A DNA stretch of 64,000 bases from Macrostomum lignano (lineage: Eukaryota), in the NCBI GenBank assembly GCA_002269645.1, contig NIVC01000221.1, positions 434,001 to 498,000 of the forward strand, read 5' to 3'. Every line of letters starts with the position of its first letter. The first letter of the stretch is position 1. Shown piece after piece: positions 4,029-62,510 of this stretch. The notes beneath the pieces were generated by a model, which did not search any database, had not been told where the DNA came from, and worked only from the letters and a program-made list of their open reading frames with translations. The position numbers were made by a program, and so were the translations under genes.

Positions 4029-4144
4029 TCAGCCTCAAAGCTTCATCCAGACCTACTCAGCCTCACAGCTTCATCCAGACTCTCTCAGCCTCACAGCTTC
4101 ATCCAGACCCACTCAGCCTCACAGCTTCATCCAGACCCCCTCAG
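4029..4144 (-). repeat. 28-bp stop-codon minisatellite of unit 2 (4 copies)
   Basis: Unit ctcagcctcacagcttcatccagaccca; on the coding strand this is GAG TGG GTC TGG ATG AAG CTG TGA (EWVWMKL*) plus 4 nt. The gene's stop at 4119-4121 lies in the copy next to the CDS. Confidence 0.95.
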
Positions 4145-4992
4145 TCTCGCTGGCCACCTCAGCGGGCACAGCGGCGAATCTCAGCAGGCGGCACATGCGG
4201 CTCGAAGGCACGAAGGCGCAGCCCTGACAGTCCGAGCTGCCGTAGCAGATGGTGGCGCATTCAACTGCACTGCTGGCTGCGATGTTGCGGTGAGTGATGG
4301 AGCTCGCGGAGGCTGTGATGTTCGGCAGAGACGTCAGGGGCAGTTTCGGCATCACCGGATTGACTGCAGAAGGGTTGGTTGAAAATATGGAATGCCAATA
4401 TAATATTTTATCAGTCAAATTAATTCGAATATTGATGGTTAAATCTTCCAATGAGAAGTAAATTTAATGAAAAAAGAGTTCAGTGTTTTTAAGTCGTCCT
4501 TCACTAACTTTACATAACCTGTGTTTACACTTGTGCGAGCTGCGTTAATCCGGAACACTTACTTTGTGGGTAAGTCAGTTCGTAGATGGAGTTTCTTGAG
4601 CCTCCACCGCAAATCTGAACCGAGTTTCCAGTGCAAGCTCTGCTGCAGTCGCCAGCCTGTGCGATGCCGTGCGATCCGTAGGCCGAGCCGCAGCAGCAGA
4701 AGCCCGCAGACTGAACTCCAAAGTAGCGAAATCGGCCGTAAGAGCACATCTGGCTGCACAGTTGCAGTGTCATCTTGGAGCCATCGTGACCGAATGCTGG
4801 GTTAGAAGGGTGAGTCTCAAACTGTCCGAACTTTTTGACTCCCTCCAGTCCTACGAGATCTCGGTTGCCATTACCGCCATCCACGTAGCAGCCGAGGTGG
4901 CGAAACTCCAACGGTTGAGGCGGCACCGCAGCAGCGGCGCAGCGTCCGGGACCAGCTGCCCAGCAGAGCAGCAAAGCGCAGAGTTTCAGCAT
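4119..4992 (-). CDS. WSC-PAN family unit 2: secreted WSC + PAN/Apple-like protein, 224 aa, two exons (4563-4992, 4119-4363)
   Basis: ATG at 4992 (MLKLCALLLCWAAG, hydrophobic leader). WSC motifs FRHLGCYVD...MTLQLCSQMC..GRFRYFGVQ..FCCCG...CS.AC.GN..QICGG..RNSIY. Donor CAA A|gtaagt and acceptor ccttctgcag|TC, both phase 1. 430+245 nt = 225 codons. Exon 2 has the PAN pattern C-x3-C-x5-C-x2-CAF-x6-CRLL. Confidence 0.9.
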
Positions 4993-5067
4993 TGGGAAAA
5001 AATCCCAGTGAGTGGCCGAACCGCAGTTTCTGAGACGCTTCTTCGGATTCTGGTAAGAAATTTGGGT

Positions 5068-5093
5068 AATATATTTGCTGGAAGAAGCCAATG
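5068..5093 (-). promoter_or_regulatory. Conserved upstream block (inverted CCAAT + AAATATATT), candidate promoter of units 2, 4 and 5
   Basis: aatatat(t/a)tgctg..agaagccaatga occurs about 75-100 nt upstream of the ATG at 5068, 40639 and 53971. The conservation may simply reflect recent duplication. Confidence 0.35.
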
Positions 5094-5224
5094 AAGAATT
5101 GACCACCTATGCTGTGCAAGGATTGGCTGAGGCTCCACCCTAATAGGAAAAAGGGATCGACCCCTAATGAGTAGCAAGACAGGAATATATCTGATATCTC
5201 TGATACTGTGTTCAAAAAGTTCAA

Positions 5225-5253
5225 AAGATAGATAGATAGATAGATGATAGATA
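5225..5253 (+). repeat. Short (GATA)n microsatellite upstream of unit 2
   Basis: agatagatagatagatagatgatagataa; positional counterpart of the approximately 800-bp array at 40838. Confidence 0.9.
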
Positions 5254-5949
5254 AGGCGAAATGAAACCACGCACACAGTTGAAGCAAATTCACAATTTCT
5301 TTAATTCTAAGAAGAAAAACTAATTTTCGACCCGAACCGAGTCTTTGTCAGGGTATATTGCAAATAAAAATCAGTGAAAACGGGCGAATTAAAACAGAGT
5401 TGGGTATTTATAGTGAGTATAAAAAACCACGTGTAAAATAAAATGATCAATATGGTTGGGGTGGGAACGATTGCAACGCGTGTGTACACCTGTTCATCTA
5501 GTTCTCATCTGAAAAGAGGTTTGAGTTTTGGGACCGAGCACTAGTTACGGCGGGCAGTTTGGATGGACATAGAATGTCCTTTAACAGTATAACTACCAAG
5601 AGGGGGAGAAAAATTCCCCCCCCCCTGACAATTTTTTTTGCTGCGCCGGTACGGAGCAACGCAGGCACACGAAATTCAAGAACACGGGCTAACTTTTTGT
5701 TGTGCACCTTCTCAAACAAGAATCAAGTCGCCAGCCTTCCGGACCGTCGAGATATTCGACGATTCTGCCAGAAGGTCTGATTTTTCCCATAAGCGTTAGT
5801 GGATTCAGTACACCCCTGTGCGCCAATTAGCACTGCGCCTCAGTGCAGCCTTGCCAAGTCTCCAAATTTCATTAGCACGTCGACCACATGTGTCTGCATC
5901 AGCTCTGACTTCGTTGGTCAATAGCCTTCCCCCAGGCGGAGCTTCTGGA

Positions 5950-6870
5950 CCTTCAACAGCTGTGGCACCAGGTGACCATGGACACCCTGTTGCAAATATG
6001 TCAGGTTTTTCTTATCAAGCTTCAATAATGGGCAAACCTCAACTGCCGGACATTCTCAGCTAGTCTCTCGAGCCTTTAGCCATCACCCCGACGCCGTTGG
6101 CACCTTCAACAGATTACACCAGGTGACTATGGACATCCTGTTGCAAATATGTCAGGTCTTTCTTATCAAGCTTCAATAATGGGCAAACCTCAACTGCCGG
6201 ACATTCTCAGCTAGTCTCTCGAGCCTTTAGTTATCACCCCGACGCCGTCGGCACCTTCAACAGATTACACCAGGTGACTATGGACATCCTGTTGCAAATA
6301 TGTCAGGTTTTTCTTATCAAGCTTCAATAATGGGCAAACCTCAACTGCCGGACATTCTCAGCTAGTCTCTCGAGCCTTTAGTCATCACCCCGACGCCGTC
6401 GGCACCTTCAACAGATTACACCAGGTGACTATGGACATCCTGTTGCAAATATGTCAGGTTTTTCTTATCAAGCTTCAATAATGGGCAAACCTCAACTGCC
6501 GGACATTCTCAGCTAGTCTCTCGAGCCTTTAGTTATCACCCCGACGCCGTCGGCACCTTCAACAGATTACACCAGGTGACTATGGACATCCTGTTGCAAA
6601 TATGTCAGGTTTTTCTTATCAAGCTTCAATAATGGGCAAACCTCAACTGCCGGACATTCTCAGCTAGTCTCTCGAGCCTTTAGTCATCACCCCGACGCCG
6701 TCGGCACCTTTAACAGATTACACCAGGTGACTATGGACATCCTGTTGCAAATATGTCAGGTTTTTCTTATCAAGCTTCAATAATGGGCAAACCTCAACTG
6801 CCGGACATTCTCAGCTAGTCTCTCGAGCCTTTAGTCATCACCCCGACGCCGTCGGCACCTTCAACAGGTG
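5950..6870 (+). repeat. 151-bp tandem satellite, about 6 near-identical copies
   Basis: The a of aggtgac recurs at 5970, 6121, 6272, 6423, 6574 and 6725, an exact period of 151. Confidence 0.95.
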
Positions 6871-7414
6871 GCAACAGGTGAGTAAGGACACCTGAGCGTG
6901 ATTTTTCATCATTCTCTTAACATTTCTGAAGCTCTCAAAATTTTTTAAGCACGGACATTGCTATAGTTAAGCTTGAACTCATGTTGCTGTATATTTATAT
7001 TATTATTACACATACTTTTATACATACGAACTACATACATTTTTTATTAGACAAGCTGTTTAGTTTATTCAACTATAATATTGAACCCAATTTTTATGCA
7101 GAAAGGGTTATGCTTTTAAAAAATGAAAAAACCTAAATTTTTTTTGCGTGCCGGTAAATTCAATCGGTTTATTCGGTACACTGTACAAAACCAGAAATAT
7201 GCGACAGAGGATATGTCAGACGATATGATTTTTGAACTTTATGGAAGTTACTAATAATTATAAATTAGTAGGAACTCGGTTAGTGAACAATAATTTACAG
7301 TATATTAATAACAGAAATTTAAAAAATGAAGCTAATGAGTTGCTTCAATTTTGACACTGAGCAAGTTTTACGCAAGCAAGTGCTCACAAATATGGGATTG
7401 GTGAGGGGATTAAA

Positions 7415-9680
7415 CCATGAGAAACTGGGGGAATCCATGAGAAACTGAGGAATTCACGAGAAACTAGGGAATTCATGAGAAACTGGGGAATTCATGAGAA
7501 ACTGGGGAATTCATGAGAAACTGGGGGAATTCATGAGAAACATAGAGAATTCATTAGAAACTGGGGAGTTCATGAGAAACTGGGAAATTCATGAGAAACT
7601 GGGGGAATTCATGAGAAACATAGAGAATTCATTAGAAACTGGGGAATTCATGAGAAACTGGGGAATTCATGAGAAACTGGGGGAATTCATGAGAAACATA
7701 GAAAATTCATTAGAAACTGGGGAGTTCATGAGAAACTGGGAAATTCATGAGAAACTGGGGGAATTCATGAGAAACATAGAGAATTCATTAGAAACTGGGG
7801 AGTTCATGAGAAACTGTGAAATTCATGAGAAACTGGGGGAATTCATGAGAAACATAGAGAATTCATTAGAAACTGGGGAATTCATGAGAAACTGGGAAAT
7901 TCATGAGAAACTGGGGAATTCATGGGAAACTGGGGAATTCATGAGAAACATAGAGAATTCATTAGAAACTGGGGAGTTCATGAGAAACTGAGAAATTCAT
8001 GAGAAACTGGGGGAATTCATGAGAAACATAGAGAATTCATCAGAAACTGGGGAATTCATGAGAAACTGGGGAAATTTATGAGAAACTGGGGAATTCATGA
8101 AAAACTGGGGAATTCATGAGAAACTGGGGAATTTATGAGAAACTGGAGAATTCATGAGAAACATAGGGAATTCATTAGAAACTGGGGAATTCATGAGAAA
8201 CTGGGGACTTCATGAAAAACTGGGGGAATTCATGAGAAACTGGGAAATTCATGAGAAACTGGGGGAAATTATGAGAAACTGGGGAATTCATGAGAAACTG
8301 GGGAGTTCATGAGAAACTGGGGAATTCATGAGAAACTGGGGAATTTATGAGAAACTGGGGAATTCATGAGAAACTGGGGGAATTCATGAGAAACTGGGAA
8401 ATTCATGAGAAACTGGGGAATTCATGAGAAACTGGGGAATTCATGGGAAACTGGGGAATTCATGAGAAACATAGGGAATTTATGAGAAACTGGGGACTTC
8501 ATGAGAAACTGGGGAGTTCATGAGAAACTGGAAAATTCATGAGAAACTGGGGGAATTCATGAGAAACATAGGGAATTCATGAGAAACTGGGGAATTCACG
8601 AGAAACTGGAGAATTCATGAGAAACTGGAGAATTCATGAAAAACATTGGGGAATTCATGAGAAACATGGAGGGATTCATGAGAAACTGGGGAATTCATGG
8701 GAAACTGGGGAATTCATGAGAAACATAGAGAATTCATGAGAAACTGGGGAATTTATGAGAAACTGGAGAATTCATGAGAAACTGGGGAATTCATGAGAAA
8801 CTGGGAAATTCATGAGAAACTGGGGAATTTATGAGAAACTGGGGAATTCATGAGAAACTGGAGAATTCATGAGAAACTGGGGAATTCATGAGAAACTGGG
8901 GAATTCATGAGAAACTGGGGAATTCATGAGAAACTGGGGAATTCATGAGAAACTGGGGAATTCACGAGAAACTGGAGAATTCATGAGAAACTGGAGAATT
9001 CATGAAAAACATTGGGGGAATTCATGAGAAACATGGGGGGATTCATGAGAAACTGGGGAATTCATTAGAAACTGTGGAATTCATGAGAAACTGGGGAATT
9101 CATGAGAAACTGGGGAATTCATGAGAAACTGGGAAATTCATGAGAAACTGGGGAGCTCATGAGAAACTGGGGAATTCATGAGAAACTGGGGAGTTCATGA
9201 GAAACTGGGGAATTCATGAGAAACTGGAGAATTCATGAAAAACATTGGGGGAATTCATGAGAAACATGGGGGGATTCATGAGAAACTGGGGAATTCATGA
9301 GAAACTGGGGAATTCATGAGAAACTGGGGAATTCACGAGAAACTGGAGAATTCATGAGAAACTGGAGAATTCATGAAAAACATTGGGGGAATTCATGAGA
9401 AACATGGGGGGATTCATTAGAAACTGGGGGAAATTATGAGAAACTGGGGAATTCATGAGAAACTGGGGAGTTCATGAGAAACTGGGGAATTAATGAGAAA
9501 CTGGGGAATTCATGAGAAACTGGGGAATTCATGAGAAACTGGGGAATTCACGAGAAACTGGAGAATTCATGAGAAACTGGAGAATTCATGAAAAACATTG
9601 GGGGAATTCATGAGAAACATGGGGGAATTAATGAGAAACTGGGGAATTTATGAGAAACAGGGGGAAATTCATGAGAAACA
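7415..9680 (+). repeat. 20-bp minisatellite GAATTCATGAGAAACTGGGG with about 81-bp higher-order repeats
   Basis: About 110 units. The 4-mer higher-order repeat shows up as the 27-aa periodicity of ORF 7494-7991. Confidence 0.97.
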
Positions 9681-9867
9681 GGGATTGATAAAGTGCAACA
9701 ATATGCATGGTTGGCTTAAGGTATGAGAACTGGCAGTATAATTTTAACACGTAAATCTAATTAAAGCTGGGATTCGAACTCGCGACCTGTCTCACTCGGC
9801 AGTGGCAGCAGATTCGCCACTGGCAACAGTGGCATCAGTTTTCTCAGCTCCGTCACCAGAAGCGGGG

Positions 9868-10219: not shown

Positions 10220-11480
10220 GAGTGCCACAGCTACCCAGAGTGATAGACAGAGTGACACACAAAGTGACACACAAAGTGACACACAAAGTGCCACAGCTAC
10301 CCAGAGTGACACACAGAGTGACACACAAAGTGACACACAAAGTGACACACAAAGTGCCGCAGCTACCCACAGTGACACACAGAGTGCAGCAGCTACCCAG
10401 AGTGACACACAAAGTGACACACAAAGTGACACACAAAGTGCCGCAGCTACCCACAGTGACACACAGAGTGCAGCAGCTACCCAGAGTGACACACAGAGTG
10501 CCACAGCTACCCAGAGTGACACACATAGTGCCGCAGCTACCCATAGTGACACACACAGTGCCACAGCTACCCAGAGTGACACACAGAGTGCAGCAGCTAC
10601 CCGGAGTGACACACAGAGTGCCACAGCTACCCAGAGTGACACAGAGTGCCACAGCTACCCAGAGTGACACACAGAGTGCAGCAGCTACCCAGAGTGACAC
10701 ACAGAGTGACACACAAAGTGACACACAAAGTGACACACAAAGTGACACAAAAAGTGACACACAAAGTGACACACAAAGTGCCGCAGCTACCCAGAGTGAC
10801 ACACAGAGTGCAGCAGCTACCCAGAGTGACAGACAGAGTGCCACACAAAGTGACACACAAAGTGACACACAAAGTGCCGCAGCTACCCAGAGTGACACAA
10901 AGTGACACACAGAGTGACACACAGAGTGCCACAGCTACCCAGAGTGACACACAGAGTGCCACAGCTACCCAGAGTGACACACAGAGTGCAGCAGCTACCC
11001 ATAGTGACACACAAAGTGCCACAGCTACCCAGAGTGACACACAGAGTACCACAGCTACCCAGAGTGACACACAAAGTGCCGCAGCTACCCAGAGTGACAC
11101 ACAAAGTGCCGCAGCTACCCAGAGTGACACACAAAGTGCCGCAGCTACCCAGAGTGACACACAAAGTGCCACAGCTACCCAGAGTGACACACAGAGTGCC
11201 GCAGCTACCCAGAGTGACACACAGAGTGCAGCAGCTACCCAGAGTGACACAAAGTGACACACAGAGTGAAACACAGAGTGCCACAGCTACCCAGAGTGAC
11301 ACACATAGTGCCACAGCTACCCAGAGTGACACACAGAGTGCCACAGCTACCCAGAGTGACACACAGAGTGCCACAGCTACCCAGAGTGACAGACAGAGTG
11401 CCACAGCTACCCAGAGGGACACAGAGTGACACACAGAGTGACACACAGAGTGACACACAGAGTGACACACAGAGTGACAC
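10220..11480 (+). repeat. Compound minisatellite: 30-bp GTGCCACAGCTACCCAGAGTGACACACAGA plus 12-bp GTGACACACA(A/G)A sub-units
   Basis: Directly visible. A short array of the same family at 25385-25510 ends in the same accacagcaccaacca flank. Confidence 0.95.
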
Positions 11481-11984: not shown

Positions 11985-14900
11985 TCGTTGGGATAAGAAT
12001 TCTGGGATATCTGAGATTCTGGGGAAAGAATCGTGAGATTCTGGGGGTAAGAATCATGAGATTCTGGGGGTAAGAATCGTGAGATTCCGGAAGTTAGAAT
12101 CGTGAGATTCTGGGGATAAGAATCGTGAGATTCTGGGATAAGAATCGTCAGATTCTGGGATAAGAATCGTGAGATTGTGGGATAAGAATCGTGAGATTCT
12201 GGGATAAGAATCGTGAGATTCTGGGATAAGAATCGTGAGATTCTGTGGGTAAGAATCGTGAGATTCTGGGGATAAGAATCGTGAGATTCTGGGATAAGAA
12301 TCGTGAGATTCTGGGGGTAAGAATCGTGAGATTGTGGGATAAGAATCGTGAGATTGTGGGATAAGAATCGTGAGATTGTGGGATAAGAATCGTGAGATTC
12401 TGGGATAAGAATCGTAAGATTCTGGGGATAAGAATCGTGAGATTCTGGGATAAGAATCGTGAGATTCTGGGATAAGAATCGTGAGATTGTGGGATAAGAA
12501 TCGTGAGATTCTGGGATAAGAATCGTGAGATTCTGTGGGTAAGAATCGTGAGATTGTGGGATAAGAATCGTGAGATTCTGGGATAAGAATCGTGAGATTC
12601 TGTGGGTAAGAATCGTGAGATTCTGGGGATAAGAATCGTGAGATTCTGGGATAAGAATCGTGAGATTATGGGATAAGAATCGTAAGATTGTGGCTTGAGA
12701 TTGTTCACAGCTTGAGATTGTGGGATAAGAATCGTGAGATTCTGGGGGTAAGAATCGTGAGATTCTGGGGATAAGAATCGTGAGATTGTGGGATAAGAAT
12801 CGTGAGATTCTGTGGGTAAGAATCGTGAGATTCTGGGGATAAGAATCGTGAGATTCTGGGATAAGAATCGTGAGATTCTGGGGGTAAGAATCGTGAGATT
12901 GTGGGATAAGAATCGTGAGATTGTGGGATAAGAATCGTGAGATTCTGGGATAAGAATCGTGAGATTGTGGGATAAGAACCGTGAGATTCTGGGATAAGAA
13001 TCGTGAGATTCTGGGGATAAGAATCGTGAGATTCTGGGATAAGAATCGTGAGATTCTGGGATAAGAATCGTGAGATTGTGGGATAAGAATCGTGAGATTC
13101 TGGGATAAGAATCGTGAGATTCTGTGGGTAAGAATCGTGAGATTCTGGGGATAAGAATCGTGAGATTCTGGGATAAGAATCTTGAGATTCTGTGGGTAAG
13201 AATCGTGAGATTCTGGGGATAAGAATCGTGAGATTCTGGGATAAGAATCGTGAGATTATGGGATAAGAATCGTAAGATTGTGGCTTGAGATTGTTCACAG
13301 CTTGAGATTGTGGGATAAGAATCGTGAGATTCTGGGGGTAAGAATCGTGAGATTCTGGGATAAGAATCATGAGATTCTGAGGGTAAGAATCGTGAGATTC
13401 AGGGATAAGAATCGTGAGATTCTGTGGGTAAGAATCGTGAGATTCTGGGGATAAGAATCGTGAGATTCTGGGGGTAAGAATCGTGAGATTGTGGGATAAG
13501 AATCGTGAGATTCTGGGGGTAAGAATCGTGAGATTCTGGGGGTAAGAATCGTGAGATTCTGGGGGTAAGAATCGTGAGATTCTGGGATAAGAATCGTGAG
13601 ATTCTGGGATAAGAATCGTGAGATTCTGGGATAAGAATCGTGAGATTGTGGGATAAGAATCGTGAGATTCTGGGGATAAGAATCGTGAGATTGTGGGATA
13701 AGAATCGTGAGATTGTGGGATAAGAATCGTGAGATTGTGGGATAAGAATCGTGAGATTGTGGGATAAGAATCGTGAGATTGTGGGATAAGAATCGTGAGA
13801 TTGTGGGATAAGAATCGTGAGATTCTGGGGTAAGAATCGTGAGATTGTGGGGTAAGAATCGTGAGATTGTGGGATAAGAATCGTGAGATTCTGGGATAAG
13901 AATCGTGAGATTATGGGATAAGAATCGTGAGATTGTGGCTTGAGATTGTTCACGGCTTGAGATTGTGGGATAAGAATCGTGAGATTGTGGGATAAGAATC
14001 GTGAGATTCTGGGATAAGAATCGTGAGATTCCGGGGGTAAGAATCTTGAGATTGTGGGGATAAGAATCGTGAGATTATGGGATAAGAATCGTGAGATTGT
14101 GGCTTGAGATTGTTCACGGCTTGAGATTGTGTGATAAGAATCGTGAGATTGTGGGATAAGAATCCTGAGATTCTGGGATAAGAATCGTGAGATTCCGGGG
14201 GTAAGAATCTTGAGATTGTGGGGGTAAGAATCGTGAGATTCTGGGATAAGAATCGTGAGATTCTGGGGGTAAGAATCGTGAGATTCTGGGGGTAAGAATC
14301 GTGAGATTCTGGGATAAGAATCGTGAGATTCTGGGATAAGAATCGTGAGATTCTGGGGTAAGAATCGTGAGATTGTGGGATAAGAATCGTGAGATTCTGG
14401 GATAAGAATCGTGAGATTCTGGGATAAGAATCGTGAGATTCTGGGGGTAAGAATCGTGAGATTGTGGGATAAGAATCGTGAGATTGTGGGATAAGAATCG
14501 TGAGATTGTGGGATAAGAATCGTGAGATTATGGGATAAGAATCGTGAGATTCTGGGATAAGAATCGTGAGATTCTGGGGGTAAGAATCGTGAGATTCTGG
14601 GGGTAAGAATCGTGAGATTCTGGGATAAGAATCGTGAGATTGTGGGATAAGAATCGTGAGATTGTGGGATAAGAATCGTGAGATTGTGGGATAAGAATCG
14701 TGAGATTGTGGGATAAGAATCGTGAGATTCTGGGGGTAAGAATCATGAGATTCTGGGATAAGAATCGTGAGATTGTGGGATAAGAATCGTGAGATTGTGG
14801 GATAAGAATCGTGAGATTGTGGGATAATAATCGTGAGATTGTGGGATAAGAATCGTGAGATTGTGGGATAAGAATCGTGAGATTGTGGGATAAGAATCGT

Positions 14901-20900: not shown

Positions 20901-21478
20901 ATAAGAATCGTGAGATTCTGGGGGTAAGAATCGTGAGATTCTGGGGGTAAGAATCATGAGATTCTGGGGGTAAGAATCGTGAGATTCTGGGATAAGAATC
21001 GTGAGATTCTGGGATAAGAATCGTGAGATTCTGGGGGTAAGAATCGTGAGATTGTGGGATAAGAATCGTGAGATTCTGGGGATAAGAATCGTGAGATTCT
21101 GGGATAAGAATCGTGAGATTCTGGGATAAGAATCGTGAGATTCTGGGATAAGAATCGTGAGATTGTGGGATAAGAATCGTGAGATTGTGGGATAAGAATC
21201 GTGAGATTGTGGGATAAGAATCGTGAGATTCTGGGGGTAAGAATCGTGAGATTGTGGGGGTAAGAATCGTGAGATTGTGGGATAAGAATCGTGAGATTCT
21301 GGGATAAGAATCGTGAGATTATGGGATAAGAATCGTGAGATTGTGGCTTGAGATTGTTCACGGCTTGAGATTGTGGGATAAGAATCGTGAGATTGTGGGA
21401 TAAGAATCGTGAGATTCTGGGATAAGAATCGTGAGAATCCGGGGGTAAGAATCTTGAGATTGTGGGGGTAAGAATCGC
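11985..21478 (+). repeat. 9.5-kb minisatellite of 22/23-bp units GTGAGATT(G/C)TGGG(A/GG)TAAGAATC
   Basis: About 420 units. It starts directly after a mariner 3' scrap (gcgctgccatctcaactgccactcgttg, 11963-11990). The landmark variant ttgtggcttgagattgttcac(a/g)gcttgag occurs 7 times. Confidence 0.98.
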
Positions 21479-24509: not shown

Positions 24510-25250
24510 GATGAGTGAGAGTGCTGTGAGTGATGAGAGTGACATCTGAAGTGCCTGTGAGTGGTGTGACATCTGGAGTGTCTATGAGTGATGAGAGTGA
24601 CATCTGGAGTGCCTTGAGAGGTGAGAATGACATCTGGAGTGCCTATGAGTGATGAGAGTGACATCTGGAGTGCCTTGAGAGGTGAGAGTGACATCTGGAG
24701 TGCCTGTGAGTGGTGAGAGTGACATCTGGATTGCCTGTGAGTGGTGAGAGTGACATCTGGAGTGCCTGTGAATGGTGAGAGTGACATCTGGAGTGCCTGT
24801 GAGTTGTGAGAGTGACATCTGGAGTGCCTGTGAGTGACGAGAGTGACATCTGGAGTGCCTGTGAGTTGTGAGAGTGACATCTGGAGTGCCTGTGAGTTGT
24901 GAGAGTGACATCTGGAGTGCCTGTGAGTGGTGAGAGTGACATCTGGAGTGCCTATGAGTGGTGAGAGTTACATGGAGTGCCTGTGAGTGGTGAGAGTGAC
25001 AACTGGAGTGCCTGTGAGTGGTGAGAAGGACATCTGGAGTGCCTGTGAGTTGTGAGAGTGACATCTGGAGTGCCTATAAGTGACGAGAGTGACATTTGGA
25101 GTGCCTGTGAGTGGTGAGAGTGACATCTGGAGTGCCTGTGAGTGGTTAGAGTGACAACTGGAGTGCCTGTGAGTGGTGAGAAGGACATCTGGAGTTCCTG
25201 TGAGTGATAAGAGTGACACCTGAAGTGCATATTAGTAATGAGAGTGATAT
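24510..25250 (+). repeat. 31-bp minisatellite GAGAGTGACATCTGGAGTGCCTGTGAGTGGT
   Basis: About 23 units, directly visible. Confidence 0.95.
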
Positions 25251-40837: not shown

Positions 40838-41640
<803 letters not shown>

Positions 41641-46397: not shown

Positions 46398-46745
46398 ACC
46401 CACAGCCTCACAGCTTCATCCAAACCCACTCAGCCTCAAAGCTTCATCCAGACCCACTCGGCCTCACAGCTTCATCCAGACCCACTTAGCCTCACAGCTT
46501 CATCCAGACCCATTCAGCCTCACAGCTTCATCAAAACCCACTAAGCCTCACAGCTTCATCCAGACCCACTCGGCCTCACAGCTTCATCCAGACCCACTCG
46601 GCCTCACAGCTTCATCCATACCCACTCAGCCTCACAGCTTCATCCAATCCAAACCCACTCAGCCTCACAGCTTCATCCAGACCCACTCGGCCTCACAGCT
46701 TCATCCATACCCACTCAGCCTCACAGCTTCATCCAGACCCACTCA
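46398..46745 (-). repeat. 28-bp stop-codon minisatellite of unit 5 (about 12 copies)
   Basis: Same unit, directly downstream of the PAN exon. Confidence 0.95.
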
Positions 46746-52700: not shown

Positions 52701-53894
52701 TTTTGCTTGCCACTACTTGCTCTGTTCCATGTACTTTTGCTTGTTACTATTTGCTCATGCACTTTTGGTTCCCATTATTTGCAAATGCACTGTATTCATA
52801 CAGTACTAAAATCGTGCATTTTAATATTTCATTAAACCTGTTCAAAAAAGTCTAATACAGATACTAAAAAGATATTTTAACGTTAAATATAGTTACAGAA
52901 ATCATTAAAACATTCTTTAACATAAAGACTCAAGGCAGCTTTGCCGGCCTGCTTCATCGGTCAGATTCTCATTGTCGGTCCAGTAGAGAGATCCGATAGA
53001 GAAACCGGCTCAATCGGCCAACGCTTCCATTTCAGAGCCTTAAGTTCACATGAAATCCCCATTTTCCCCATTTATCCCATTCAGGGAGCCCAAATGATAG
53101 AGAGATGCGGTTTTCGACGATTCTTCTCTCATTGTCGGTCCAGTAGAGAGATCCGATAGAGAAACCGGCTTAATCGGCCACCGCTTCCATTTCAGAGCCT
53201 TAAGTTCACATGAAATCCCAATTTTTCCCCATTTGTCCTATGCGGAAGCGGCCGGGGTGGAAGAAAGATCAATTACGCTTTTCTTGTCTATTTTGGGTCT
53301 GAATAGTGAGAATTTTGCAGCGGTTTGGTTGCTGGACTCACGGCTTCCAAATCGCGCTTAAGTTCAAATCCTCTTTCGAATATCACGGGGACTTAAAAAC
53401 GACATTTTAAAGTCGTATTTTGGCTAAATTAAAGAACCCTGTTTTTACGCATGAAAGAGCTGCGTCAATCCAAAATGCTTACTTGGTGAGTAAGTCAATT
53501 CATAGATGGAATTGCTGTAAGCCCCACCGCAAATCTGAGACGAGTTTCCGCTGCAAGCCAAGCTGCAGTGGCCAGCCGATGCGATGCCTTGCGATCCATA
53601 GGCCGAGCCGCAGCAGCAGAAGGCCGCAGACTGAACTCCAAAGTAGCGAAATCGGCCGTAAGAGCACATCTGGCTGCACAGTTGCAGTGTCATCTTGGCG
53701 TCATCGAAACCGAACGCTGGGGCGAGAGGGTGAGTCTCAAACTGTCCGAACTTTTTCACCCCCTCCAGTCCTACAAGATCTCGGTTGCCAACAGCGCCAT
53801 CCACGTAGCAGCCGAGGTGGCGAAACTCCAACGGTTGAGGCGGCACCGCAGCAGCGGCTGCCCAGCAGAGCAGCAGAGCGCAGAGTTTCAGCAT
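46721..53894 (-). CDS. WSC-PAN family unit 5: 218 aa if exon 53483-53894 is spliced to 46721-46965 across a 6.5-kb intron
   Basis: Intact leader + WSC exon (412 nt, donor A|gtaagc) and intact PAN exon (245 nt, cttctacag|TC), phase-compatible. The intron holds two element copies and two decoy exon ends, so this splicing is inferred. Confidence 0.6.
47146..47256 (-). pseudogene. Duplicated 3' end of the WSC exon with intact donor (copy 1; copy 2 at 50314-50424)
   Basis: HGIASAGHCSLACSGNSSQICGETYRNSIYELTYSP|gtaagc. Part of a direct repeat of about 220 bp at 47036, 50205 and 53374. Confidence 0.9.
47257..50204 (+). mobile_element. Defective element X, copy 1: inverted arms of tandem 161-bp units around a decayed transposase-like interior
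   Basis: 161-bp unit at 47261 and 47422, and inverted at about 49797-50068. The interior peptides FPRIEIENLQEVSVGPFHVQQSESYI and SRHTSRTYRV...AYYSSSKVGSRTAGCDCHVMAVLLLLG resemble the C-terminal SWIM-like region of Harbinger/ISL2EU-related transposases (by eye). The frames are broken. Confidence 0.65.
50425..53373 (+). mobile_element. Defective element X, copy 2 (tandem, near-identical)
   Basis: Offset 3168-3169 nt. The ORF track repeats identically except around a 1-bp indel near 52503. Confidence 0.7.
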
Positions 53895-54443
53895 TGGGAA
53901 AAAATCCCAGACAGTGACCGAACCGAAGTTTTTAAAGACGCTTCTTCTGATTCAGCCAAGAAACCAAAGCAATATATATGCTGGCAGAAGCCAATGAAAA
54001 ATCGCCTGCACTAATGCTGCATATGGATTGGTCGAGGTTTCACCAAAAAGCTTTTTTTGCACTTGGAGCTACACAGGGCCTTGAAGGAATTCTTTAGATA
54101 GATGTGGGCATCTAATGTTTCCCTATTTTTCCTAAGGAAGATTTCAATTACTTGCCTGCAGTACAAGTCAGATATTAGGCTAAAAATTAAAACAAATGAA
54201 AATACATCTATGATTTTTTATTTGTAGTTGACATTTGAAAAAGTCTTATAAATATTGAGACATGGCTCTAAAGTACAACTGTGTATTTTTATAAGTGCGC
54301 CATGATTATTATGTTTCTTTCCAGAATTCTTCTCGGTTATTGTCGTTGTTATTGTTATTATTGTTTATTATTATTATTACTATGTTATTATTATGTGATT
54401 AATATTAATAATATTATTGTTATTGTCATTAGATCGATCAGCC

Positions 54444-56511
54444 TCACAGCTTCATCCAGACCCACTCAGTCTCGCTGGCCACCTCAGCGGGCCCAGCGGC
54501 GAATCTCAGCAGGCGGCACATGCGGCTCGAAGGCACGAAGGCGCAGCCCTGACAGACCGGGCTTCGCTGGCAGGTGGCGGCGCATTGGATGGCGCTCTTC
54601 GCCGTGGAGTTGCGATAGGCAGAAGCGCTCGCCAAGACTGAGATGCTTGGCATGTCGGTCACTGGTAGCTTGGTCATGATTTTTTCAGCTGTGGGAGAAT
54701 TGCAAGGTTTACTCAAAATTATAGGAATCAATCAGTCAACCAAACGTAGGTTTTGTAGTTTTCAAATGATGAATGTCCCATTAAGGCATAAAGAATCTTA
54801 TGGTTGACTGAAAGAATCCATTAAGGCATATCCCAGATCCTGTCGATTTCAGGGGTCCTTAGACTAGTACTCTACTAGCGGCGCTCTGATGTGCCAGCGG
54901 CCCAGGCTCGATTCCAAGTGCGGTCAAATTAATTTGGTGCTAAATTGGAATCTCGGCTTGGCTCTGCTCGTGTAATTAGCGGCCTTGAAGGCCTATCACC
55001 CAGGCGCAGTGAAGTGTAAATTCCTAACCATTTTATAAAAGGTTGTTTTTCAAAAAATCGACAATCAACAAAAAGGAACACCAACACCAACTTGCACCGT
55101 GAAAAGGGTTTCTTCACGGTAAGAGGGTCAAATCCAAAGTTAGAACCCCACAGAATAAAGATAGTTTGGGCCATAGACAGCCCAAGACTGAGAGACAGGC
55201 AAACCTTTAAGTGGACATCCAAACTGGCAATTTACAGCCATAGAGATCGATGTGCCTTTCTGTTAGATTCTACACAGTTGTCAGAGCTTGCCTTCACATT
55301 AGCATTACGGATTGTTATTGTATGGTTATTCCCCCAGTTCTATTTAAGTTTTTAAAACACAATCACACTTAGGTGTTAATCAACTTATTTATAAATGTAA
55401 ATTGCAAGTTTAGACGTCCACTCCCGCGCGCCTAAAAATTTGATTGCCTCTTCCTAGTTAAATCTTCCGTCTTCCGACTTACCTGACTGGCTGAGGCTAA
55501 CTTGGAAGAAGTGGGTGATTTAACTAGGAAGACGGAAGAATCGTTTAATTTATTGAGCGTCGCGGAAATTTAGGACCTATACCTGAATTTTACTACTGCG
55601 GTTAGTAGTTGAATAAAATTTAGTAAGATGATTAATTATTTTAGTTATGAAAAGCCCTAGAAGTAGTAGGAATAACAATTGAAGTACAGCTTTGTTTAAG
55701 TGCTTTTAATTCAAACGGTCAGTTTAACTAGGGCTCGATCTTTAATTTCACTCATTCTTAGTTTAACCCTGAATATTCACAGCTAAACTAGAAATTCAAC
55801 TAGGAATAGGCTTAATTTTTTTAAGCGGCCTTCCAGGTTTGCCTGTCTCTCAGTCAGGCTTCTCAGTGCTGTCTATGGCCCCATCTATATCTTTATTCTA
55901 TGAGATTTTTAGTCGGACAAAAGCAGTATCAGTATAATTCGCTTTATTTCAGGCCTCCGGTAGCATTTCTTGTTTCATACCCATACTTGTTTCAGATAAA
56001 ATTAGGAAGCTCAACATTCAAGCTTCAGTGAAACTGACATGTTTTGTGAGTTTAGCCAACTTTCAATGCATGCAAGCGATTACCTACTAGGCTTATAGAC
56101 GATTTCAAAGATGGAATTGGTCCAGCTGGCACCGCACACCTGCGACGCGTTCCCACTGCAAAGAGCAGCGCATTTTCTCTCCTCGACCGCGCCAAGCGAC
56201 CCGTAAGCAGATCCGCAGCAGCAAAAAAAAGCTGCTTGCACACCAAAATAGCGGAACCGACCGTATGAGCAGATCCGGCTGCACTTCTGCAGTGTCATTT
56301 TCCTGCTCTTGACGAAGGCGCTGTACTTGCGGTCAACTGTGTACCGGTCTAACGCAATGACGCCTTCCAGTCCTTGCAGGTCTCGATCGCTGTTACTTCT
56401 GCTGTCAGCGAAGCATCCGATGTAGCGAACTTCTCGAAACTGGGGCGGCTCAGAAGCCAGCAACGGCACCCATGCAGACAGGAAGGCAACTAAAATTATA
56501 GGCGCTTGCAT
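54444..56511 (-). CDS. WSC-PAN family unit 6: divergent secreted WSC + PAN protein, 222 aa (exons 56088-56511, 54444-54688)
   Basis: MQAPIILVAFLSAWVPLLAS leader and VRYIGCFAD...CCCG...CGASWTNSIF. Donor CCT A|gtaggt and acceptor ctcccacag|CT, phase 1. 424+245 nt; 1399-nt intron. Confidence 0.87.
54888..55020 (+). mobile_element. Truncated SINE family 1 copy in the unit-6 intron
   Basis: gtgccagcggcccaggctcgattccaagtgc...ggaatctcggcttggctctgctcgtg...aggcgcagtgaagtgta matches about 29295-29425. Confidence 0.8.
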
Positions 56512-56974
56512 TGCTCCAGGTGTGTTTCCATTTCTTCATAGCAATCAGCCGTCAAAGTCTTTATACTGACAGCCAGACAATTATCATGGCAGCTTTTCAA
56601 AAGAGGATTTTCGATGCTTCAATTCTAGACAGGGAAAATGTAGGATTTTTGTTCGTGAGAGCGAAAGAAGTTGAATATGCGGGAACTACCAGCTGTGGTG
56701 AAGTAGACAGCTTATTATTGCCTTTTAGCACCTGGCATCTGTAAAGTTGAATTGTTGAATCTAAAGATATCTTCTTTCGGTTGGAAATATTCAGTTGTTT
56801 AGTCTTCAATTCCAATACCTCAGCTTCAAGACTTACTAGTTGCAAATGAAGTAAAGATGTGTCCTGTTCAAGTCGCAACCACAAGTTTATCAAGATATTT
56901 TCCATGAAATGCAGCAGCTGTATTCACTGTTGTCCCATGATTTTGCGGACCGGAATCCTGTCCGACCACCCACC

Positions 56975-57090: not shown

Positions 57091-57299
57091 GAAGAAAGAT
57101 CCTATCAAAAAATTACATTTGCAGTTGTTATACCAACAAGCTTTATAAATAATAAAAGATAAACCACATAAAATACACGAGATTCAGATTTGGCCAAGTC
57201 CGCCATGATTAGGTATTACTCAGAACTCTTGTCACTGTTTATCATTAGATAGATCGAAATCATCAGGACTCACGCAGCCTCACAGTGCAGTGATAGTTT

Positions 57300-57598
57300 T
57301 ATCCAGACCCACTCAGCCTCACAGCTTCATCCAGACCCACTCAGCCTCACAGCTTCATCCAGACCCACTCAGCCTCACAGCTTCATCCAGACCCACTCAG
57401 CCTCACAGCTTCATCCAGACCCACTCAGCCTCACAGCTTCATCCAGACCCACTCAGCCTCACAGCTTCATCCAGACCCACTCAGCCTCACAGCTTCATCC
57501 AGACCCACTCAGCCTCACAGCTTCATCCAGACCCACTCAGCCTCACAGCTTCATCCAGACCCACTCAGCCTCACAACATCATCCAGACCCGCTCAGTC
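57300..57598 (-). repeat. 28-bp stop-codon minisatellite of unit 7 (about 10 near-perfect copies)
   Basis: Same unit. Confidence 0.95.
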
Positions 57599-58762
57599 TC
57601 GCTAGCCACCTCAGCGGTGAATCTAAGCAGGCGGCACATGCGGCTCGAAGGCACAAAGGCGCAGCCCTGACAGTCCGGGCTTCGCTGGCAGAAGGAGGCG
57701 CACTGGAAGACACTGCTGACTTCTGTGCTAAGGGCGGTGACGGATTTCAGCTTCTTGTAGCTTGAAACGGTTGGCATTTTTACAACTTGCAGTCTTGTCA
57801 GCAGAGAGCGATCTGAGTGTGGTGGTACATGTGTTAGGATAGGAATATTGTCAATTGCTAAGATTAATTACTGTCAAATTTACGTTTTTACCCAGCATTC
57901 AAACTCGGACTTACCCACATGATAAGTTACTTCATGCATAAATAGAGTTGCTCACTTCCCCACCGCATATCTGAGATACATTGCCGCTGCATTTGGATTG
58001 GCAGTTGCTCTCAAAATCCTTTCCATTTGATCCGTACATCCTGCCGCAGTAGCAAAACGAATCGAATTGACAACCAAAGTAGCGGAACCGCCCATATGAG
58101 CAGCTCGGGCTGCACAGCTCCACAGTGAGCGAATTACTTTCAAAAAACCGCCGACAGCATTTAAATGGCCCAGCGAGACCAAAGCCCTGGGCTAACGCCC
58201 CCGACTACCGGCAATCCCGTGCGGTTGTCCCCTGTCCTTCCCCCGCCTTGCGCTGGGCCCTGCTTGGACTCTACTGCAGGGACATCAGGGCGGTGAACAT
58301 GGCCGTCATGGCTGTTTTGCCAGGCATCGTCACCTCCATGGAAAAATCCGCAGTGAGGAATGCCCCTTCTGCCTCTCCGGTGTCGAGAATGCGGAGCACT
58401 TTATCTGTGAATGCCCCGCCTTTACTAGGCTCACCTACCTCGGCCCAAACCCGGATCTCTCCGATGTTTTCTGGCCCGAGAATCTCTGCCAGCTCGTCCG
58501 CTACCCAAGGGCTACCGGGTGGACGACAAACCACCTCCTGGACTCTCTGGAGGGGGACTGCGCTGCGGACACCGGCACCACTGGAACTCCCTGCGCGACA
58601 CCGCAGCAAGAGACCAGAGCCCAAAATTCCTCTCAGATCTTTGTAACTTTCCGCATAGCAACCGACGTAGCGAATGCGTTGCGATTGCGGTGGTACGGAA
58701 GTGGTGCACAGCCTACCAAGAGCTGCACAGAACAGCAGGAGATTAATTGGTAGTATTTTTAT
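57571..58762 (-). pseudogene. WSC-PAN family unit 7 (pseudogene)
   Basis: Reconstructed (I)[50 protein letters not shown]|[34 protein letters not shown]... The presumed start reads ATA. A 422-bp insertion interrupts exon 1, and a 4-bp frameshift (TAT GCA TGA) precedes the donor at 57914. Acceptor cacactcag|AT at 57813; the PAN exon is open. Confidence 0.85.
58188..58609 (-). mobile_element. 422-bp GC-rich insertion with a 13-bp target-site duplication
   Basis: gagacca(a/g)agccc at 58175-58187 and 58610-58622. Removing the insert and one repeat restores the WSC frame. Confidence 0.8.
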
Positions 58763-59794
58763 CTTTGCATAGCTAATTCAGATAATAAATACGCTCGTAT
58801 GAGGATAATAAATCTGTGTCGGCAGTCCATGAGTTCGATTTCTCGCATTCATCGATTTACTCAGATATGTGAATTTCTTGCTTTCTTGAGTTATGCGTAT
58901 ATTCACAGGTCCTGTCAAAGTTTACCCAACCCCCTTTCCTTACTCCCGCTTCGGTGGCCAGGGATCGATTTGGGAGAAAAAAAGAGAATGAATGCTGATG
59001 GAAGAAGATCCATTCGATTTCTCCTGACTTGCAGAGTCGCATTCTTCACTTCCGACGCGGGTGAGGAGTGACAGCTCTGCCTTGGTTGATTCACAGGCAT
59101 CAGTAAGGAAGACTTGGGATCTGTTTTCTCACGGTTGGATGCAGGGAAACTTTTCCAGCTTCCTGGATAAAGGAAGTGGACCAAGCGAGCTGATGAAGAT
59201 TGTAACTAAAGTGACGCTTTTGTTCAGGACAGCAAAAGCAGTCCAACTGTTGCTGTCACAGAGGCACCTCTGCTACTTTGGATGCTCAGTTTTCAGTTTC
59301 CATTGAATATTTTATTTTTTATTTCATAATTCGTCCTACCGTTTTGCAGTGAAGTTGAGCTCCTGTAAAGATTGCTCAAATAGATTTGTGCCGTCATAGC
59401 GTAACCCTTTTCTATCTTTAGTTTCTCACGAAAAAGCATGATGCAAAAGAAGCAACATTAAGATCGTGTTAGTTCACGGTTCTTTAGGTTGAAATTCATT
59501 TATACTGCCACGCGTTTGGCAATTCCGTCAATAAGTGTGACTTAAAGGTAGTTTATTAGTTTCCTAGTTATAATTCGGTATCGTTGATGAAGCGTATCAA
59601 CCCAACGAGATAAACTTTCAACATTTTATCTTAAATGGAAAATAAAGAATCTCTTAAAACCTTATTACAGAACATTATGCACGTACCAGCTTGTTACAAT
59701 GGCAGCAAGATATGTACTGATAGAACATAAAATACTTTTGACGCCTAGAAGGACTACTGTTTGAGTTTTTTATTGTAGAAACAGTGATAGTTTA

Positions 59795-60145
59795 CCCAGA
59801 CCCGCTCAGCCTCACAGCTCCATCCATACCCACTCAGTCTCACAGTTTCATCCAGACCCTCTCATTCTCACAGCCTCATCCAGACCCGCTCAGTCTCACA
59901 GCTCCATTCATACCCACTCAGTCTCACAGTTTCATCCAGACCCTCTCATTCTCAAAGCCTCATCCAGACCCACTCAGCCTCACAGCTTCATCCAGACCCT
60001 CTCATTCTCACAGCCTCATCCAGACCCGCTTAACCTCACAGCTTCATCCAGACCCACTCAGTCTCACAGTTTCATCCAGACCCACTCAGCCTCATAGCTT
60101 CATCCAGACCTACTCAGCCTCACAGCTTCATCCAGACCCATTCAG
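59795..60145 (-). repeat. 28-bp stop-codon minisatellite of unit 8 (about 12 diverged copies, with an 84-bp higher-order duplication)
   Basis: Lies between the stop (60120) and AATAAA (59769-59774). Confidence 0.92.
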
Positions 60146-61066
60146 CCTCGCTGGCCACCTCAGCGGGCACAGCGGTGAATCTCAGCAGGCGGCACATGCG
60201 GCTCAAAGGCGCGAAGGCGCAGCCCTGACAGTCCGGGCTTCGCTGGCAGGCGGCAGCGCACTGGATGGCGCTCTTGGCATAGACGCTGCTGTGAGTGATG
60301 GAGCTCAGTGAAGCTGAGATGCTCGGCATGGCAGAAGCTGGCAGCTTGGTCACTGCTTGGCCAGCTACAAAAGTTGTATTAGAACAGAATTTAGAAATTT
60401 TTACTCAAAAACTAGAAATAATAAATCTGTTTACGAGTGTATGGAAATATCTGGGATTTATTCAACGAACACCGATTGCCCTGACTTTTCCAGTTAGAAT
60501 TTGCAGTTTGGTTTTAAAAAGAATACTTTCAGTATGAAATCATAAAAAATCCTGCTTTGTGTTACGGTTTTTGATGTTTTAATGAGGTTGCCGTCCTGAC
60601 AGGCAAAACAAAATTTGCATGATAAAAAGTCCCTCTCACCGTGATTGTAAATATTTTCGTAGACGGAGTTCCTCATGTCTCCACCACAAATTTGAGATGA
60701 GTTTCCCTTGCATTTATACGAGCAGTCACTAGCCGAGGCTGTACCGAACGAGCCGTAGGTGTTGCCGCAGCAGCAGTATCCACCGTACCTCGCTCCGAAG
60801 TACCGAAATCTCCCATAAGCGCAGATCTGGCTGCACAGCTGCAGCGTCATCGAAGCGCCTTGCGCAATTGATGGCCATCCTGACAAGATCGAATACGGAC
60901 CGAATGTAGCGACTCCAACGAGGCCCGTCATGTCGGGGTGGTCCGTAGTGTCCACGAAGCAGCCGATGTAGCGGAATGTCGTCGGATGAGGCGGCACGGA
61001 AGTCAAGCAGCTTCCGAACGCTGCCCACATCAGCAAGTAGCCTACAGAAAAGCTTTTTGAAAACAT
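60120..61066 (-). CDS. WSC-PAN family unit 8: secreted WSC + PAN protein, 223 aa (exons 60640-61066, 60120-60364)
   Basis: MFSKSFSVGYLLMWAAFGSCLTS leader and FRYIGCFVD...YCCCG...ICGGDMRNSVY. Donor CAC G|gtgaga and acceptor cttttgtag|CT, phase 1. 427+245 nt. Confidence 0.9.
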
Positions 61067-61314
61067 TTGATCCTCTGCTGGTCTTTATGGTCAGTGTTTG
61101 GAGTTTTGGGGTTTCCGAATGTGCCTGCTCTGTGCTGTGAACCGGTTCCTACGCTTATGTTTTGATCGTAACCGCTTCTGATGTTTTCCCGACTCGGGAA
61201 TGGCTGTCTGGTTGCTAGGGGCCTGAGCCAGTGAGAAAGCAGCTGCATTTTCAAGCTCGTGCTGCGCTCATGAGCCACTAAAATAAAGTTAAGGACGCTG
61301 CACTCGCCAATCGC

Positions 61315-61566
61315 GGGTTGTAGCCTAGTGGTTAGATCGTCGGACTCACGACTTGAAGGCCGGGGGTTCGATTCCCTATCCACTCAGAAAAATTTGTGTC
61401 ATTGAGCAAGACACTTGACTCTGCATTGCTTCAGTTCACACAGCTGTAAAATCGGTGCCAGCATTAGCTGGGGTAATTGAGGGTGTGTGGCGACTCCCAG
61501 TCCCTGGACTTAACAGCCGTACGCAGCCTTCAGCTGCTCCGCGCAATTGCTGCGGCTGAGCTGTCG
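61315..61566 (+). mobile_element. tRNA-headed SINE family 2 (CORE/MIR-like body)
   Basis: TAGCCTAGTGG and GGTTCGATTCC boxes; ttgagcaagacacttgactct...cttcagtt...ctgtaaaat. Shares the 3' end gctgagctgtcg with the 45066 copy. Confidence 0.78.
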
Positions 61567-62059
61567 TTCCATTAAGCTTTGCGTTTCATTTCGATCTGTT
61601 TCGGAAATACAACTGTGTTTTGAGCGCTGTCGTTCTGTAATAATACATTTTTCAATCTATTCACTTGAATAATTTCGTTTCACATTGTATTGGGCAGTCC
61701 AGATATTGAGATGCGCGAGTTTAGTGTTAAAAACTGAACTTAGTTGCGTATATCATGTCAGGTTCAGAATGTATTTACAACTATATTAAATCCAAAAGTT
61801 TAAATTGAGCTAGTAAATTTAATTTTGAATGTAACAATCCTTTATTAGTAATTTTAGTAGAACCATACGTTTTCCCTCGACACTTGCATTCCATTCACAA
61901 TAAAGGCATTGCATTTTCAGTAGTTATTCTTGATAGCGTTGCAAATAATAAGGCATAAAGAATAGTCAAAGCCTGAGTCATGTCTATTTTTAATAAGTGC
62001 GCTATAATTCTTGCCCAGAATCCTTTTAACAGTTTTTCATTAGAGATGAATCAGCGTGG

Positions 62060-62510
62060 CAGTTTCATCCAGACCCACTCAGCATCACAGCTTCATCCAG
62101 ACCCACTCAGCTTCACAGCTTCATCCAGATCCGCTCAGCCTCACAGCTTTAATTAGACCCACTCAGCTTCACAGCTTTATCCAGATCCACTCAGCTTCAC
62201 AGCTTCATTCAGACCCACTCAGTTTCACAGTTTCATCCAGATCTGCTCAGTCTCACAGCTTTAATTAGACCCACTCAGCTTCACAGCTTTATCCAGATCC
62301 ACTCAGCTTCACAGCTTCATTCAGACCCACTCAGTTTCACAGTTTCATCCAGATCTGCTCAGTCTCACAGCTTCATCCAGACCCATTCAGCCTCACAGCT
62401 TCATCCAAATCCGCTCAGCCTCACAGCTTCATCCAGACCCATTCAGCCTCACAGCTTCATCCAGATCCGCTCAGCCTCACAGCTTCATCCAGACCCACTG
62501 AACCTCACAG
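62060..62510 (-). repeat. 28-bp stop-codon minisatellite of unit 9 (about 16 copies, with a 112-bp higher-order duplication)
   Basis: Same unit, diverged. Confidence 0.92.

Follow-up and report, generated by a model that had tools for sequence, protein, structure and literature searches.

A stop-codon-spanning 28-bp minisatellite and a conversion-like island in clustered WSC+PAN paralogs of Macrostomum lignano

Two kinds of human tandem repeat serve here as points of reference: the SLC6A3/DAT1 gene carries a 40-bp variable number tandem repeat (VNTR) in its 3′ untranslated region (3′-UTR), and the minisatellites MS32 and CEB1 undergo polar gene conversion, which reaches the flanking DNA from one end. 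Partial concerted evolution of paralogs by gene conversion is described for the UTRs of the BEX, WEX and GASP genes (PMC1274310). The present analysis concerns a 64,000-nucleotide stretch of the Macrostomum lignano genome (contig NIVC01000221.1 of assembly GCA_002269645.1, positions 434,001 to 498,000, hereafter the window), where two-exon genes for secreted WSC+PAN proteins lie in a cluster. They are here called units 1 to 9; some are intact, and three (units 3, 7 and 9) are pseudogenes. A 28-bp minisatellite begins within the last codons of these genes, and concerted evolution among the paralogs affects both this array and the ~108 nt of coding sequence next to it.

The 28-bp repeat, GCTGAGTGGGTCTGGATGAAGCTGTGAG, is made of eight terminal codons and the stop codon (AEWVWMKL*, the asterisk standing for the stop) plus one base, i.e., 27 + 1. 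With up to three mismatches allowed, this 28-mer has 49 matches in the window, as compared with 0.00 expected from shuffles, and all of these lie on the minus strand, in seven blocks located directly at the ends of PAN-domain exons. On that strand, each block starts with the in-frame exon end ...CAFVPSSRMCRLLRFAAVPAEVASE(A/T)EWVWMKL*, the stop being TGA, and this register bears out the original prediction, made from the letters alone, that the repeat consists of the terminal codons and stop of the PAN exon. In the window and in the further loci that were fetched, the repeat is confined to the ends of WSC+PAN genes. It has the head-to-tail 28-bp period of a minisatellite, with 4-16 copies at six loci of the window and ~18 at an unlinked paralog, locus L001. 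Since its sense strand contains TGA in all three frames (positions 3, 17 and 25), only the first repeat can be coding, and the later ones are untranslated whatever the frame; its antisense strand is stop-free in all frames.

Counted in register and with the coding repeat included, there are 4 copies in unit 2, 5 in unit 4, 12 in unit 5, 1 in unit 6, 11 in unit 7, 12 in unit 8, and 16 in unit 9. The numbers first proposed agree with these. Unit 3 is indeed, as had been said, without an array and without its stop: a single diverged repeat on the plus strand (34933-34960) reads AEWFWMKHL... with no stop codon. Tandem arrays of all kinds make up 31% of the window, and more than ten further minisatellites accompany the 28-bp array at L001, while simple and tandem repeats represent 15% of the M. 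lignano genome (PMC5730564). Given so repeat-rich a background, a 3′-UTR minisatellite is to be expected in this species.

The evidence for concerted evolution comes from synonymous divergence, taken as the proportion of synonymous differences (method of Nei and Gojobori, NG86) between subfamilies (units 2/4/5, unit 6, unit 8 and L001). The WSC exon, with values of 0.54-0.78, and the 5′ half of the PAN exon, with 0.44-0.63, are close to saturation. Over the last 36 codons (~108 nt), comparisons within the window cluster give 0-0.08, and comparisons with the unlinked L001 give 0.19-0.24. Between units 2 and 6, for example, none of the 25 synonymous sites in this island differs, as against 88 of the 128 sites elsewhere (Fisher p = 1.9e-11), and significance is reached in each of the six pairs tested, with Fisher p values between 1.9e-11 and 9.5e-4. 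At ~108 nt 5′ of the stop, pairwise divergence per site falls from ~0.4-0.55 to ~0.03-0.1; a local drop at synonymous sites is thus combined with a sharp boundary, as in a conversion tract. A blastn comparison of units 6 and 8 found a sole shared tract of 162 bp with 93.8% identity (54438-54599 and 60114-60275), which corresponds to the first repeat and the 134 nt upstream of it. On the 3′ side, no alignment is found between the flanks of different subfamilies, so that the island extends no further than the array. In the comparison with L001, the synonymous differences fall in the 5′ third of the island, and a single codon differs in the 72 nt nearest the array.

Protein-level selection cannot explain an island in which the synonymous sites themselves are frozen. 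The most likely explanation is gene conversion between paralogs, which would start at or near the arrays and would be commoner among linked copies. Conversion is favoured because linked copies show a stronger effect than does the unlinked L001, because this effect increases towards the array, and because units 3 and 8 lose their homology at a break within the first repeat (34954, aligned to 60125), which marks the array as a site of rearrangement. This island and this break also make it probable that the arrays offer homology for exchange between paralogs, as had been suggested.

A further question is whether each locus created its array or inherited it. The L001 gene, P0007, a paralog with 55% protein identity on a different scaffold, has its ~18 copies of the 28-bp repeat beginning at its own last eight codons, with a 56-bp higher-order repeat in the array and an AATAAA 85 nt beyond it. 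A tree from which the C-terminal 40 residues were left out places L001 as the sister of the window cluster, with a subfamily that ends in AQWVWVKP as the outgroup. The outgroup gene L002 (...GKFATRV*) has no array and a plain 3′-UTR of ~140 nt. In another outgroup model, P0013, which is frameshifted, 25 residues of unique sequence follow the homologous AQWVWVKP end; since P0013 reads on past the tail, array repeats with their stops in three frames cannot follow there. Back-translation of the P0013 tail would allow the outgroup a GNCTGA flank, but was too ambiguous to rely on. It follows from the outgroups that the tail peptide was there before the array.

The edges of the arrays are held in common: units 2 and 4 have the same last array repeat (…TAGG…CTTTGAG) and the same 3′ flank, units 7, 8 and 9 have the same decayed final repeat ending AAACT[A/G][T/C]CAC, and units 6, 7 and 9 have the same flank beyond the final repeat. 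Every array with at least two repeats has a consensus that equals that of the family or is one base off. The coding repeat of unit 2 differs at 2 of 28 positions from its downstream repeats, and that of unit 7, ACTGAGCGGGTCTGGATGATGTTGTGAG, at 4 positions from the nine repeats that come next, which are mutually identical and equal to the family consensus; the unit 7 array was therefore not built from the present last codons of its gene. Together with the common edge repeats and the identical repeat at L001, this result goes against the proposal that the terminal codons of each paralog gave rise to its own array. A single origin of the array, at the base of the AEWVWMKL clade, is the most likely. 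In that event, the 28-bp end segment of the ancestral gene (eight codons, TGA, and one base) would have been duplicated in tandem, a short GCTGA repeat bracketing the segment having probably let replication slippage occur, and gene duplication would have taken the array to the paralogs.

Repeated expansion and homogenisation have occurred locus by locus, in intact genes and pseudogenes alike, which upholds the idea of renewed expansion at each locus. Higher-order repeats of 56, 84 and 112 bp are found across the arrays; the 84-bp period of unit 8 and the 112-bp period of unit 9, both reported earlier, are confirmed by self-identity at the corresponding lag (92% over 59796-60010 and 100% over 62140-62370, respectively). 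The interior variants are mostly private: T3C is found only in unit 5, G10A and G28A only in unit 9, C2A and A19G/A20G only in unit 8, and G4T mostly in L001. The nine identical repeats of unit 7 point in the same direction. Within arrays, repeats differ pairwise at a mean of 1.0 of 28 positions in unit 4, the lowest value, and of 4.7 in unit 9, the highest. When distances within and between arrays were compared, 106 of 2000 shuffles reached the observed value; this test is weak, as the arrays share one consensus centre, so the case for local turnover rests on the private variants and the higher-order repeats. The processes involved were likely slippage and unequal sister-chromatid exchange.

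As regards the transcript, seven of nine loci (units 2-9 and L001) have AATAAA or ATTAAA at a distance of 36-90 nt beyond the array or lone repeat, with AATAAA at units 2, 3, 6, 8 and L001 and ATTAAA at units 4 and 9; no canonical poly(A) signal lies within 200 nt in units 5 and 7. The arrays of units 2 and 8 are located between the stop and AATAAA, as foreseen (Table 1). Since the array follows the stop and precedes the poly(A) signal, the repeats past the first most likely belong to the 3′-UTR.

Copy number itself probably has little or no function. Pseudogenes 7 and 9 have 11 and 16 repeats, and intact genes have 1 to 18; pseudogene arrays are thus as long as those of intact genes, and a pattern of constraint in functional genes with relaxation or loss in pseudogenes is not seen. 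The folding of 281 nt of the unit 4 3′ end, predicted as RNA, is no better than that of shuffled sequences (z = +0.27), the pure array gives z = -1.78 versus shuffled sequences, and Rfam has no match at the gathering threshold. These copy numbers, and the absence of a folding signal, speak against the suggestion that copy number tunes expression. Another suggestion, that the array regenerates the C-terminus, is not supported either: the diverged coding repeats of units 2 and 7 stand unrepaired. In unit 2 (4118-4145), GGG replaces TGG and thereby changes W to G at a nearly invariant Trp of the family; this change is not an assembly error, since it is also present in UniRef A0A1I8J167.

The probable account is, then, that a minisatellite was inherited by one M. 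lignano WSC+PAN clade, with local turnover, with conversion that takes in the adjoining coding sequence, and with little or no function for copy number. Several points weigh against this account. Nucleotide-level selection, whether on an RNA element or on an overlapping antisense feature, could also reduce synonymous divergence. A single origin is the parsimonious reading, and the lone repeat of unit 6 could be the unexpanded ancestral state and not a collapsed array. The argument from GCTGA microhomology is partly circular, the terminal partial repeat of any array also reading GCTGA. Finally, the 3′-UTR status of the array is read from poly(A) signals, and units 5 and 7 are without a canonical one.

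Selection on nucleotides would be expected if the repeat were a functional 3′-UTR module that binds an RNA-binding protein or a small RNA, so that copy number sets mRNA stability or translation, which is the functional reading first proposed. Such a module would fit with a consensus that is identical at loci where synonymous sites are otherwise saturated, with the nearly frozen synonymous sites of the last 108 nt, and with the position of the array upstream of the poly(A) signal; it is nonetheless unlikely, given that intact genes span 1 to 18 copies, that pseudogenes 7 and 9 retain long arrays (that of unit 7 being very uniform), that interior substitutions are many in units 8 and 9 (mean pairwise difference 4.1-4.7 of 28 positions), and that neither the folding results nor Rfam give any sign of a structured RNA. 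There is also a small chance that the array is a homogenising anchor, either a conversion hotspot or a shared regulatory platform, which is kept because it ties the paralogs together; the C-terminal half of PAN, the AEWVWMKL tail and the 3′-UTR would then be kept alike, while the N-terminal parts of these possibly seminal-fluid proteins would diverge freely.

It is doubtful that the origin was independent and recurrent, with each paralog separately duplicating its own terminal 28 bp at a slippage-prone GCTGAG...GCTGA, in which case the arrays would not be homologous by descent. This would account for the private interior variants and for the single repeat of unit 6, bracketed by GCTGA, in a genome very prone to form minisatellites, but not for the decayed terminal repeat common to units 7, 8 and 9 and the other common to units 2 and 4, nor for a unit 7 array that is 4 positions off its own coding repeat and yet equal to the family consensus, nor for the identical repeat and register at an unlinked locus. 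The order of events might also be reversed, the minisatellite coming first and a reading frame running into it so as to borrow the AEWVWMKL* tail. The stops in three frames would end any entering frame within one repeat, and the 18 nt upstream (GCTGAGGTGGCCAGCGAG) look like a decayed repeat; this order is, however, very improbable in view of the homologous tail (…EVASEAQWVWVKP*) retained in outgroup subfamilies, of the lack of an array after that tail in at least one outgroup (P0013), and of the limitation of the repeat, across the window and the fetched loci, to WSC+PAN gene ends. Hardly credible is an overlapping antisense gene, in which the antisense of the array, open in three frames, continues into the antisense of PAN and a constraint on two strands would freeze the synonymous sites. 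Long plus-strand open reading frames (ORFs) do span arrays and PAN exons (e.g., 3996-4379, 57253-57762 and 59742-60308), and the automated gene model P0205 takes in such antisense sequence. Against this reading, a change in the copy number of a 28-bp repeat shifts the antisense frame relative to the PAN part, GC-rich coding sequence is often stop-free on its antisense strand, and P0205 is clearly chimeric.

Table 1. Coordinates of the gene copies, 28-bp arrays and other repeats in the window (TRF, Tandem Repeats Finder).
Feature	Position	Strand	Remarks
Unit 1	about 927-1523	+	fragment
AATAAA of unit 2	3973-3978	-	55 nt beyond last full array unit
Unit 2 array	4022..4145	-	coding unit 4118-4145 (ETEGVWMKL*), 3 full units, decayed partial unit; TRF 4022-4148, 4.5 copies
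Unit 2 gene	4122-4992	-	intact; WSC exon 4564-4992, PAN exon about 4122-4362
Unit 2 low-divergence island	4122-4229	-	last 108 nt of coding sequence
Satellite, 151 bp x6.3	5949-6894		
Satellite, 19 bp x117	7416-9683		reverse-complement relative, 28 bp x32, at 30808-31696
30-bp arrays	10341-11480		
22-bp satellite	12012-21477		9.4 kb; related 23-bp array at 22608-23680
Satellite, 31 bp x24	24519-25252		
Unit 3	34248-34953	+	pseudogene in inverted orientation; WSC exon interrupted by in-frame stops; neither terminal stop codon nor array; 34248-34960 with its one diverged unit
Unit 4 array	39563-39714	-	5 units and partial unit; TRF 39563-39717, 5.5 copies
Unit 4 gene	39691-40564	-	intact; WSC exon 40142-40564, PAN exon 39691-39933
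Unit 5 array	46403-46747	-	12 units (one a 33-bp variant); T3C and C12A private, locally duplicated pattern; TRF 46403-46750, 12.2 copies
Unit 5 gene	46724 to about 53900	-	both exons intact; WSC exon about 53490-53900, PAN exon 46724-46966
Unit 6 lone unit	54443-54470	-	28-mer match; ETEWVWMKL*, then GCTGA and AT-rich flank; AATAAA 73 nt downstream
Unit 6 gene	54447-56514	-	intact; WSC exon about 56092-56514, 1.4-kb intron, PAN exon 54447-54689
Unit 6 low-divergence island	54447-54554	-	last 108 nt of coding sequence
Unit 7 array	57290-57597	-	coding unit 57570-57597 (ETERVWMML*), nine units (57318-57569), one decayed unit; TRF 57301-57600, 10.7 copies
Unit 7	57574-58756	-	pseudogene; no ATG, foreign insertion in WSC exon, frameshift before splice donor
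AATAAA of unit 8	about 59769-59774	-	36 nt past array
Unit 8 array	59796-60146	-	12 units; 84-bp higher-order repeat distally; TRF 59796-60149, 12.6 copies
Unit 8 gene	60123-61060	-	intact; WSC exon about 60647-61060, PAN exon 60123-60365
Unit 8 low-divergence island	60123-60230	-	last 108 nt of coding sequence
Unit 9 array	62056-62510	-	16 units; perfect 112-bp higher-order repeat at 62140-62370; TRF 62060-62510, 16.1 copies
Unit 9	62511-62917	-	pseudogene; WSC exon reduced to 3′ part (62792-62917), PAN exon broken and internally deleted

The gene map was obtained by tblastn and by inspection of the frames. Spliced unit 2 encodes a protein that, over the 94% of it that aligns, matches A0A1I8J167, a WSC-domain protein of M. 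lignano, with 100% identity, and on direct reading a single residue differs, S in the window for P in the entry; its close relatives all come from M. lignano. Its Pfam scores are 40.4 bits for WSC (cut-off 27.8; E = 3.5e-10) and, at the borderline, 21.5 bits for PAN_1 (cut-off 21.4). The WSC+PAN proteins have an N-terminal hydrophobic leader, as read by eye, and the intron of unit 2 is GT-AG and in phase 1. A profile search of the whole library found many WSC proteins, including further Macrostomum-like WSC+PAN subfamilies, none of which has the AEWVWMKL tail apart from those already known. The unlinked paralogs at L001 (12071-14482) and L002 (13307-14452) are single, unclustered genes, the former (P0007) adjoining a cytochrome P450 gene and the latter a metallophosphoesterase gene.

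Among the candidate seminal-fluid transcripts of M. lignano that are limited to the prostate, those with a WSC domain are common (PMC5977470 Table S1, PMC6953679, PMC4490696). These resemble the window genes in that they encode small secreted WSC-domain proteins of the same species, and their listed size of ~0.7-1.4 kb would suit the window genes with their arrays. The tie is one of description and size, and a seminal-fluid role of the WSC+PAN genes is therefore a lead only.

Several observations concern single units. The unit 1 fragment (927-1523, plus strand) shares 93.5% identity with the 5′ region of unit 3 (33800-34397, plus strand), and the orientation of these two, opposite to that of the others, suggests an inverted segmental duplication with its break in the first repeat of unit 3. 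The 1115-amino-acid model P0205 is a chimera over about 34300-34960 plus the antisense of a unit 2-like gene; it joins the stop-less PAN exon of unit 3, antisense WSC+PAN ORFs and satellite-derived peptides. Just 5′ of the unit 4 gene lies an (ATAG)n microsatellite of ~201 copies (40835-41639). The spliced product of unit 5 matches UniRef A0A1I8J1U2, and the ~6.5-kb intron of this unit contains a 3.39-kb tandem duplication (47036-50424 versus 50205-53593, with 99.8% identity), which repeats the 3′ part of the WSC exon and bears (over 47036-53593) inverted repeats of ~270 bp (47261-47528 and 49798-50072); it could represent either a transposon of the terminal-inverted-repeat type or a duplication made in assembly. 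The same intron contains, at 51718-52600, frame-broken ORFs that resemble a ubiquitin C-terminal hydrolase, with Pfam UCH below the cut-off. The WSC exon of unit 7 is split by a ~480-bp foreign insertion (about 58142-58618), in which a long interspersed nuclear element was suspected from a Cys/His-rich motif, reminiscent of a retrotransposon 3′ end, in a plus-strand ORF (58196-58750); a Pfam search of the insertion gave no match, and this identity was not retained. In unit 9, the PAN deletion leaves the array abutting, with ...CTGTGAG running directly into GTTCAG.

A ~25-kb block of the window (5949-31696) consists mostly of satellites, and in it, related arrays in opposite orientation flank the 22-bp satellite, which hints at an inverted arrangement. 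A dispersed element of ~155 bp is present at 54883-55039 and 63284-63439 (84% identity between these two copies) and also at 61045-61383. It may be a short interspersed nuclear element (SINE), and its translations appear tRNA-like; as ARAGORN found no tRNA gene, the idea of a tRNA-derived SINE was set aside.

The paper on the M. lignano genome describes how ORF-bearing transcripts were merged with downstream pieces bearing poly(A) across repetitive stretches (PMC5730564), and arrays of the 28-bp kind would cause transcript breaks at such repetitive 3′ regions. Arrays of this kind, along with GC-rich exons, also invite chimeric gene models such as P0205. If the array was indeed inherited and is subject to turnover and conversion, it would constitute a natural example of a minisatellite that arose across a stop codon and was passed on by gene duplication, and which marks, and perhaps drives, the concerted evolution of a small island in genes whose remaining sequence is saturated with changes.

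With VNTRs of the DAT1 type, the M. lignano arrays have in common the head-to-tail repeats, each some tens of bases long, that come after the stop and before the poly(A) signal, the variable copy number, the higher-order repeats, the decayed edges and the uniform interior. Unlike the DAT1 repeat, the M. lignano array begins inside the coding sequence, with the last eight codons and the stop, and is common to a whole clade of paralogs; its copy variation is known between paralogs, from one assembly per locus. The likeness to MS32 and CEB1 lies in the minisatellite as a site of conversion, and polarity of their kind would explain why the island is found only 5′ of the array; the events at MS32 and CEB1 take place between germline alleles, whereas in M. 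lignano the exchange would be between paralogs and is inferred only. BEX, WEX and GASP (PMC1274310) likewise have a short, near-identical tract with sharp boundaries in sequence that has otherwise diverged; the M. lignano tract differs in comprising ~108 nt of coding sequence and in being bounded by a minisatellite on its 3′ side. A search of the full-text literature with a 20-nt core of the repeat gave no match, and no direct precedent was found there for minisatellites that span the stop codon in paralogs. In kind, the locus is a 3′-UTR minisatellite combined with partial concerted evolution and involves no new mechanism; what is unusual is that the last eight codons are already part of the array, so that it starts within coding sequence, that it has been passed through a gene clade otherwise saturated with changes, and that it borders a conversion-like island.

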